From: Ostrea edulis
Lineage: Eukaryota
Length of the DNA stretch: 64,000 nucleotides
Direction: 5' to 3'
NCBI RefSeq assembly: GCF_947568905.1
Contig: NC_079167.1
Location: 28,644,001-28,708,000, forward strand
The translations under genes and the position numbers were made by a program. The first letter of the stretch is position 1; each line of letters opens with the position of its first letter. The notes below the pieces were generated by a model that did not search any database, was not told where the DNA came from, and saw only the letters and a list, made by a program, of their open reading frames with translations. This document shows, in pieces, positions 2,179-2,858 of the stretch.

Positions 2179-2858
2179 TGAAGGGCTGCAAAATTTATGC
2201 CTATGCTCGGCGCTTACTGCCTTTGGGCAGGGGGGAATCTTTATCGTGACACGGGACCTCGGTTTTTTGCGGTCTCATCTGAAGGACCGTCCCATTTAAA
2301 ATGTTACTGACACTTATTCCCTATTAGCAAGTTGTATAGAACTACTAAATGCGTACGAGTTGACAAAATACATATCTCCCGGATTCACACATTTTAAAGG
2401 AAAACAACGTTATTCCGAAAGATTGAATAATACGAAGGGGAAAGTTCTCGTTTTCAGACCATGACCAACTCCAGCGATAAAATTTATAAATGTTTCATAA
2501 TTCATTGTTCCAGAGTATCGATGGCATAAAAATCATTCTACGATAATAATTTGATTTTGTTATACCACAAAGTTGGGTCCTAGCGACATCTGTTGGCAGT
2601 TCTCAACTTCCTGTAGACAGATTTTTTCCACACTGTGGTCATTCTGGGAATCCTCTGTTACACCCCACCTCATATCCACCACCTGAAAATCTAGATCCTT
2701 GGACAAGCAAAACTGTTTCAGCTTTGGGAAAACCTCTCGAGATAAGATATTTCTTTCTGCCCTCATGTCTGCAAAAATATAACCATACTTTTAGTTATCC
2801 AACCTGGGTTTGGATCTTTCTCATATACGGGTACATGTCAAATGTCATTCTCTTCTTT

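Follow-up and report, generated by a model that had tools for sequence, protein, structure and literature searches.

Short-tract interlocus gene conversion between diverged paralogs is known from the human gamma-globin genes, RHD/RHCE, and the exons of the red and green opsin genes, and the palindromes of the primate Y chromosome undergo arm-to-arm conversion between arms that are near-identical over tens of kilobases. In plants, head-to-head paired NLR genes such as RRS1/RPS4 and RGA4/RGA5 form sensor/helper pairs with an integrated decoy. For oysters, a study of Magallana gigas reports gene conversion in the HSP70 family (PMC11268181); for NWD1-like or DUF4062 genes, our literature search yielded no report of conversion. 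The DUF4062 domain adopts a TIR-like ("NIR") NADase fold in NWD1, NWD2, TEP1, and NPHP3; NADase activity has been shown for TEP1 only, human NWD1 and NWD2 being inactive in vitro (preprints 10.64898/2026.05.01.722283 and 10.64898/2026.09.04.749371).

We analyzed a stretch of 64,000 nt, referred to below as the window, from a 94.4-Mb chromosome record of the Ostrea edulis assembly GCA_947568905.1. The window carries two NWD1-like genes of immune type, here named L (minus strand, protein P0009; gene B of an earlier note on this DNA) and R (plus strand, protein P0001; gene A of that note), which share an identical tract of 174 nt. It is highly probable that this tract (tract 1) results from interlocus gene conversion between old inverted paralogs and represents the latest event of a recurrent process confined to small islands. 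As in the gamma-globin, RHD/RHCE, and opsin cases, the tract is not longer than a few hundred nucleotides, its silent sites are homogenised, its flanks are spared, and copies from the same species cluster together in the tract only. Unlike in those cases, the oyster paralogs are far older (51% protein identity, saturated silent sites), and their exchange is restricted to two small islands that recur across genera. The locus resembles the Y-chromosome palindromes in the intrachromosomal exchange between inverted copies and in the order-preserving non-crossover outcomes, but L and R share only 174 nt and 163 nt. Like the HSP70 family of M. gigas, the locus is a case of oyster paralogs evolving in concert; the HSP70 genes form a large, recently expanded tandem family, whereas L and R are an ancient two-gene pair with domain-limited exchange. 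The mechanism of conversion itself is well known, and the L/R case reveals no new one; what is new is the second tract and the recurrence in Saccostrea.

The exon chains of both genes were rebuilt, using for L the whole gene sequence including the part beyond the window (L001), and they translate exactly to the database proteins P0009 and P0001 with intact reading frames. The genes and the features relevant to tract 1 are as follows.

1 to 4465 in the window, minus strand: L, NWD1-like gene (P0009, 1730 aa); coding exons 1 to 7 and, of exon 8, its first 94 nt, the rest lying past the left edge
4465-4403, 4177-4131, 3267-3227, 3027-2899, 2768-2566, 1921-1757, 1381-1195, and 94-1, minus strand: coding exons of L in the window
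2566 to 2768, minus strand: exon 5 of L, 203 nt, N-terminal core of the DUF4062 (TIR-like) domain, MRAERN...GPNFV
2563 to 2736, minus strand: tract 1, L copy (P0009), 171 nt of exon 5 and the GTA of the splice donor
17041 to 45890, plus strand: R, NWD1-like gene (P0001, 1744 aa), 12 coding exons
28197 to 28399, plus strand: exon 6 of R, 203 nt, same DUF4062 domain core as exon 5 of L
28229 to 28402, plus strand: tract 1, R copy (P0001), 171 nt of exon 6 and the GTA of the splice donor
35715 to 39465, plus strand: large exon of R (3.75 kb), NACHT, winged helix, and WD40 repeats

L and R are arranged head to head, their start codons lying approximately 12.6 kb apart. The interval contains, on the minus strand at 10412-13284, a decayed LINE-type retrotransposon seen as three ORFs that match endonuclease/exonuclease/phosphatase, reverse transcriptase, and DUF6451.

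The Pfam DUF4062 family (PF13271, cut-off 24.7 bits) was detected in both proteins, with 44.3 bits at residues 85-171 of L and 43.3 bits at residues 92-178 of R, and is recognised only together with its flanks, the 67-aa exon peptide alone giving no Pfam match. R further matches NACHT (28.7 bits, cut-off 26.7), HTH_NWD1 (36.4 bits, cut-off 27), and many WD40/beta-propeller families, and its database name is "NACHT domain- and WD repeat-containing protein 1-like". The precomputed matches of L comprise HTH_NWD1 (WHD_NWD1) and WD40 propeller families, with NACHT (PF05729) absent from the list; the P-loop motif APSGNGKTS of R is also kept in L in the pairwise alignment. On the basis of these matches, both genes are classified as encoding NWD1-like STAND NTPases with predicted DUF4062, NACHT, winged-helix, and WD40 parts, an architecture that the oyster proteins share with the STAND proteins NWD1, NWD2, and TEP1 (DUF4062, NACHT, helical/winged-helix region, WD40). 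The region with the converted exon aligns to the TIR-like chain of TEP1 (11gz_A) with an E-value of 1.6e-14 (HMMER). The 203-nt exon corresponds to approximately positions 17-77 of the chain, and the alignment ends at position 93, before the catalytic E1008 of TEP1. The converted exon thus encodes the N-terminal part of the domain core, with the equivalent of the catalytic glutamate located beyond the aligned stretch and hence outside the exon, as far as the alignment with 11gz_A indicates.

Base-by-base comparison of the two strands demonstrated that the reverse complement of 2563-2736 equals 28229-28402 over 174 nt without a mismatch, minus-strand 2736 to 2563 running against plus-strand 28229 to 28402, and this is the longest exact run between them. 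The two copies are spaced approximately 25 kb apart. They lie within the longest inverted repeat reported by the repeat finder (2563-2775 / 28190-28402, 213 nt, 95% identity). Of the 174 nt, 171 belong to the 203-nt exon and the last three are the GTA of the splice donor. The remaining first 32 nt of the exon contain 10 differences between L and R, and at the other end the identity stops after the donor-site GTA, the flanking introns being devoid of similarity. The base-for-base identity, the 10 differences in the first 32 nt, and the unrelated introns described in the earlier note were all recovered in this comparison. In the coding sequence alignment of L and R, the longest identical run is 173 nt, compared to a maximum of 32 nt and a mean of 17 nt in 2000 permutations of the codon columns. 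Given a silent-site identity of 0.78, the highest value for the 203-nt exon between unconverted copies, 54 consecutive identical synonymous codons have a probability of approximately 1.5e-6. Chance is thereby excluded as the source of the identity.

The rest of the two genes is clearly diverged, and a recent duplication of the whole gene is ruled out. The codon alignment of L and R in O. edulis has a nucleotide identity of 0.595 and a third-position identity of 0.42, and the background outside the tracts is about 0.57 identical at the nucleotide level. The NG86 estimate of dS is saturated, undefined, or at least 0.98 in every exon outside the tracts, which bears out the previous description of the neighbouring exons as saturated at silent sites. 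Within the 203-nt exon, the first 10 codons are saturated, whereas dS is 0 for the 57 codons of tract 1; the exon that follows is 65% identical with saturated dS.

A second stretch in the genes departs from this background. It encodes the winged-helix (HTH_NWD1) part of the large exon and has the following coordinates.

36825 to 36987, plus strand: tract 2, R copy, 163 nt, with 7 mismatches to L
8345 to 8507 of L001, outside the window: tract 2, L copy

Tract 2 is 96% identical between L and R, with a dS of 0.19 between two saturated flanks, and constitutes a second, older conversion island. Scanning of the Rfam collection gave no family match at tract 1 or tract 2, and an embedded RNA family at the tracts was rejected as a candidate on this ground.

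We further assessed the distribution of both islands in other oysters. Protein searches identified L-type orthologs in Saccostrea cucullata (P0010) and S. echinata (P0026), and R-type genes in S. echinata (P0002 and P0006), S. cucullata (P0008), and Crassostrea angulata (P0005); no L-type Crassostrea gene was present among the matches listed. Another C. angulata protein, P0003 (labelled isoform X2 and assumed to represent a second R-type gene), has no gene record and was left out of the nucleotide analyses. The loci were fetched and the exon chains rebuilt, and the 203-nt exon is present in the gene of every relative. Both Saccostrea genomes keep the head-to-head arrangement of L and R. In the background, L against R gives a synonymous-codon identity of 0.42 in each of O. 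edulis, S. echinata, and S. cucullata, compared to 0.55-0.60 between orthologs of different genera, which places the duplication before the split between Ostrea and Saccostrea. The corresponding L-R values within tract 1 rise to 1.00 in O. edulis, 0.94 in S. echinata (98% of nucleotides), and 0.81 in S. cucullata. In S. echinata, the two genes agree at every base of the final ~127 nt of the 203-nt exon and of the GTA behind it, next to unrelated introns; this event is independent of the one in O. edulis and shares its 3' boundary. When L was scanned against R in 30-codon windows within each species, the same two islands alone stood out, at residues ~90-175 and ~705-768, both with a third-position identity of at least 0.72 in O. 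edulis, S. echinata, and S. cucullata compared to a median of 0.40. For tract 2 in Saccostrea, the L-R identity is 0.72 across species and 0.72-0.78 within species, versus 0.44-0.65 between Saccostrea and Ostrea, a pattern that fits an older conversion in the Saccostrea stem, as judged from these identities.

The obtained trees are in agreement with these values. The background separates an L clade from an R clade with a support of 100 and an internal branch of 0.52 substitutions per site. In the tree of tract 1, the L and R copies of O. edulis form one pair and those of S. echinata another, and the L/R split is rejected by the AU test (delta lnL 44, p < 1e-4). In the tree of tract 2, L and R of O. 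edulis group with a support of 100 and are nested among the R-type copies, the Saccostrea L copies stand together, and the L/R split is likewise rejected (delta lnL 17.8, p = 0.003). The within-species clustering that the earlier note had proposed as a test in per-exon trees of relatives is thus observed for the 203-nt exon; its suggestion that only this exon is affected is incomplete, since the winged-helix island behaves in the same way.

The presence of both tract 1 copies in O. edulis DNA was assessed using Logan contigs of three DNA runs from three studies (X3, X5, and X6) placed on positions 2100-3200; the evidence comes from contigs rather than long reads, and rare variants are lost from Logan contigs. 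In X6, tract 1 forms a contig of its own, exactly 174 nt long (2563-2736) and with a depth of 121.8, overlapping by 30 nt with each of two flank contigs, one of 323 nt (2270-2592, depth 49.4) and one of 180 nt (from 2707, depth 45). This is the configuration of a k = 31 graph in which exactly these 174 nt occupy more than one locus. The tract-to-flank depth ratio is approximately 2.6, not 2.0. In X5, the tract contig runs 114 nt further into sequence that does not match the L flank and has a mean depth of 38.7 compared to 26-29, which fits two copies. In X3, a 620-nt contig over 2270-2855 crosses the L tract without branching and with zero differences. No variant letters inside tract 1 were listed in the X3, X5, or X6 contigs. 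The intron beside the tract contains a very high-copy short interspersed repeat at 2100-2320, with further copies near 766, 7764, 8880, 9724, and 27785; Logan word depths there reach 1e5-1e7 and hundreds of contigs end in it, so that depths in this part are uninformative on the genes.

The junction on the R side was probed with a 64-nt segment (28199-28262) that spans the boundary between R-specific sequence and the tract and is represented by only two sampled words. Both words are present in 20 O. edulis DNA runs from seven studies; with the Logan contigs, these runs place both copies of tract 1 in real DNA of independent individuals. Neither word was found in the runs listed for study P2, namely X3, X9, and X37. 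For the L locus, X3 and X9 score 0.86-0.91, and X37 is not listed in the L-locus search. X3 is also the run with the unbranched contig across the L tract. The R exon may therefore differ in some oysters, and the conversion may be polymorphic rather than fixed. The P2 oysters could carry an unconverted or otherwise different R exon, in which case the conversion would be polymorphic with R as its acceptor; a single-nucleotide polymorphism near the junction and low coverage are other possible causes of the missing words. Should the P2 runs really carry an unconverted R exon, O. edulis would still segregate for the latest conversion, which would make its effect on fitness measurable. Variant O. 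edulis alleles were also sought via ORF fragments of the R exon; the best match in the protein collection was only a Crassostrea-like fragment (P0193), followed by other fragments. The RNA run X19 (organism B) covers only exon 4 of L, with two differences, and leaves tract 1 uncovered.

These data bear on two explanations that do without any exchange between the genes. According to one of them, one of the loci is in truth diverged and the identical tract was written into the assembly by polishing or by misassignment of reads, and polishing with mis-mapped short reads can a priori create short identical stretches between paralogs. Against it stand the exact 174-nt contig of X6, whose elevated depth and 30-nt overlaps with both L flanks indicate that at least two loci share these letters, the continuation of the X5 tract contig into sequence other than L, the uninterrupted 620-nt contig over the L locus in X3, the R-junction words in 20 runs of seven studies, and the same phenomenon in S. 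echinata, a different assembly. An assembly or polishing artefact is therefore largely refuted and very unlikely, the least probable of the readings weighed here. According to the other, the nucleotides of both copies were held in place by extreme purifying selection, for example on splicing enhancers, an RNA structure, or another embedded element. Of all windows in the gene, the core of the 203-nt exon is indeed the one most similar between genera at silent sites (0.73 versus a median of 0.58, rank 1 of 544), and its central ~35 nt do not vary among the eight copies, pointing to a possible constraint on its synonymous sites. However, the Saccostrea and Crassostrea orthologs differ from tract 1 of O. 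edulis at 10-12% of nucleotides and ~25% of third positions, whereas the two O. edulis copies differ at none; the sequence can thus change, and 100% identity cannot be the product of constraint alone. In addition, the tract copies cluster by species rather than by paralog, in two genera, and the tract lacks an Rfam match. We therefore assign purifying selection without exchange a very low probability, only slightly above that of an artefact. In the older comparisons (S. cucullata and across genera), part of the similarity in tract 1 may nevertheless reflect constraint rather than exchange.

A third explanation accepts the exchange and differs in its route, namely repair from a spliced-transcript or cDNA template, or template switching between the inverted copies during replication, instead of classical double-strand-break repair with a heteroduplex. 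The identity ends at the 3' end of the exon in both O. edulis and S. echinata, as an RNA template would give. A spliced RNA template, however, should extend into the next exon, which is diverged between L and R (65% identity, saturated dS), and the unrelated introns would force any homology-dependent tract to stop at the junction anyway. Such a route appears improbable to us, though less so than either explanation without exchange; exchange mechanisms of these kinds leave the same trace at the level of sequence alone and cannot be separated by it.

Gene conversion by homology-dependent exchange between L and R is hence the preferred reading of tract 1. A short non-crossover ectopic conversion very probably copied not more than 174 nt of the exon for the DUF4062 core from one gene into the other. 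The 3' end of the tract lies at the exon-intron junction since homology stops there, and its 5' end lies 32 nt inside the exon. On this reading, the exon core and the winged-helix island have been homogenised between L and R independently in Ostrea and Saccostrea, the rest of the genes having diverged to saturation. The two islands are the most conserved stretches and would thereby retain enough nucleotide identity for heteroduplex formation; for the exon core in particular, the high conservation of silent sites presumably means that conversion can still start there. Each conversion would renew the identity, making the process self-sustaining, and given the inverted orientation, only non-crossover outcomes would leave the gene order intact. 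The recent non-allelic conversion claimed in the earlier note is upheld by the silent sites, the trees, the independent reads, and the relatives, and needs correction in the restriction to one exon and in the direction that had been read from CpG content.

Conversion had been proposed to run from the CpG-poor R into L. The underlying counts were reproduced exactly: one CpG in tract 1, one in the preceding 138-nt exon of R, and six in 129 nt and seven in 165 nt of the flanking exons of L. However, the 171-nt core holds only 0-2 CpG (o/e 0-0.23) in all eight copies from four species. The CpG poverty thus belongs to the exon core and is silent on the last donor, and CpG content was rejected as a donor marker for tract 1, the core being CpG-poor in both paralog types. 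Over the whole coding sequence, the CpG o/e ratio is 0.74 for L and 0.33 for R (0.77 and 0.33 without the 203-nt exon), a gap that may reflect different germline methylation histories of the two paralogs. The L-type copies in Saccostrea likewise have higher ratios than P0002 and P0008, the R-type copies from the corresponding species. Tract 1 contains no sites diagnostic for L or R, because the Saccostrea copies have been homogenised too. In tract 2, L of O. edulis bears the R states at six diagnostic sites; together with the nested position in the tract 2 tree, these sites point to R as the donor for tract 2.

The functional meaning of the exchange is more tentative. L and R may act as a pair, co-assembling via their DUF4062 cores and winged-helix/NACHT interfaces, with selection favouring the recurrent conversion of exactly the two islands, across the Ostrea-Saccostrea divergence, since it keeps these surfaces matched; we regard this as unlikely, and selection to keep the TIR-like and winged-helix surfaces of both proteins matched is a speculation. 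The likeness to RRS1/RPS4 and RGA4/RGA5 consists of two STAND/NLR-type genes in a conserved divergent orientation with related N-terminal signalling domains and serves as a lead only. Unlike the plant pairs, L and R are paralogs that share one architecture, without a sensor/helper split or an integrated decoy. A matched-interface pair, if true, would be an animal counterpart of the plant paired NLRs.

Apart from its function, the locus provides a clean and well-bounded natural example in which conversion maintains identity in small islands of very old paralogs that are saturated elsewhere, and it marks the core of the TIR-like NADase-fold domain as the part never allowed to differ between L and R. 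The recurrence at the same islands in separate genera is useful for studying the homology requirements of ectopic conversion in molluscs, and it serves as a warning that trees of single exons may be misleading in bivalve STAND/NLR-like families.

Several minor elements were found in and around the two genes. Four tandem 49-nt units (family D17) at 1355-1560 cover the acceptor site and the first bases of exon 7 of L (1381 to 1195). Long tandem arrays with periods of ~166, 47, 45, and 19 nt are located at 19990-22578, 25570-26956, 33829-34652, and 53519-54211, respectively, the first three in introns of R and the last one downstream of this gene. The intron after the large exon of R contains a 211-aa ORF on the minus strand (40019-40654) with weak HTH_23/HTH_32 matches, probably a transposase remnant. 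A tRNA-like element on the plus strand at 44630-44702, in the R intron between exons 11 and 12, matches the Rfam tRNA family with 45.4 bits; ARAGORN gives it a four-base anticodon and no amino acid, and it may be a tRNA-derived repeat.
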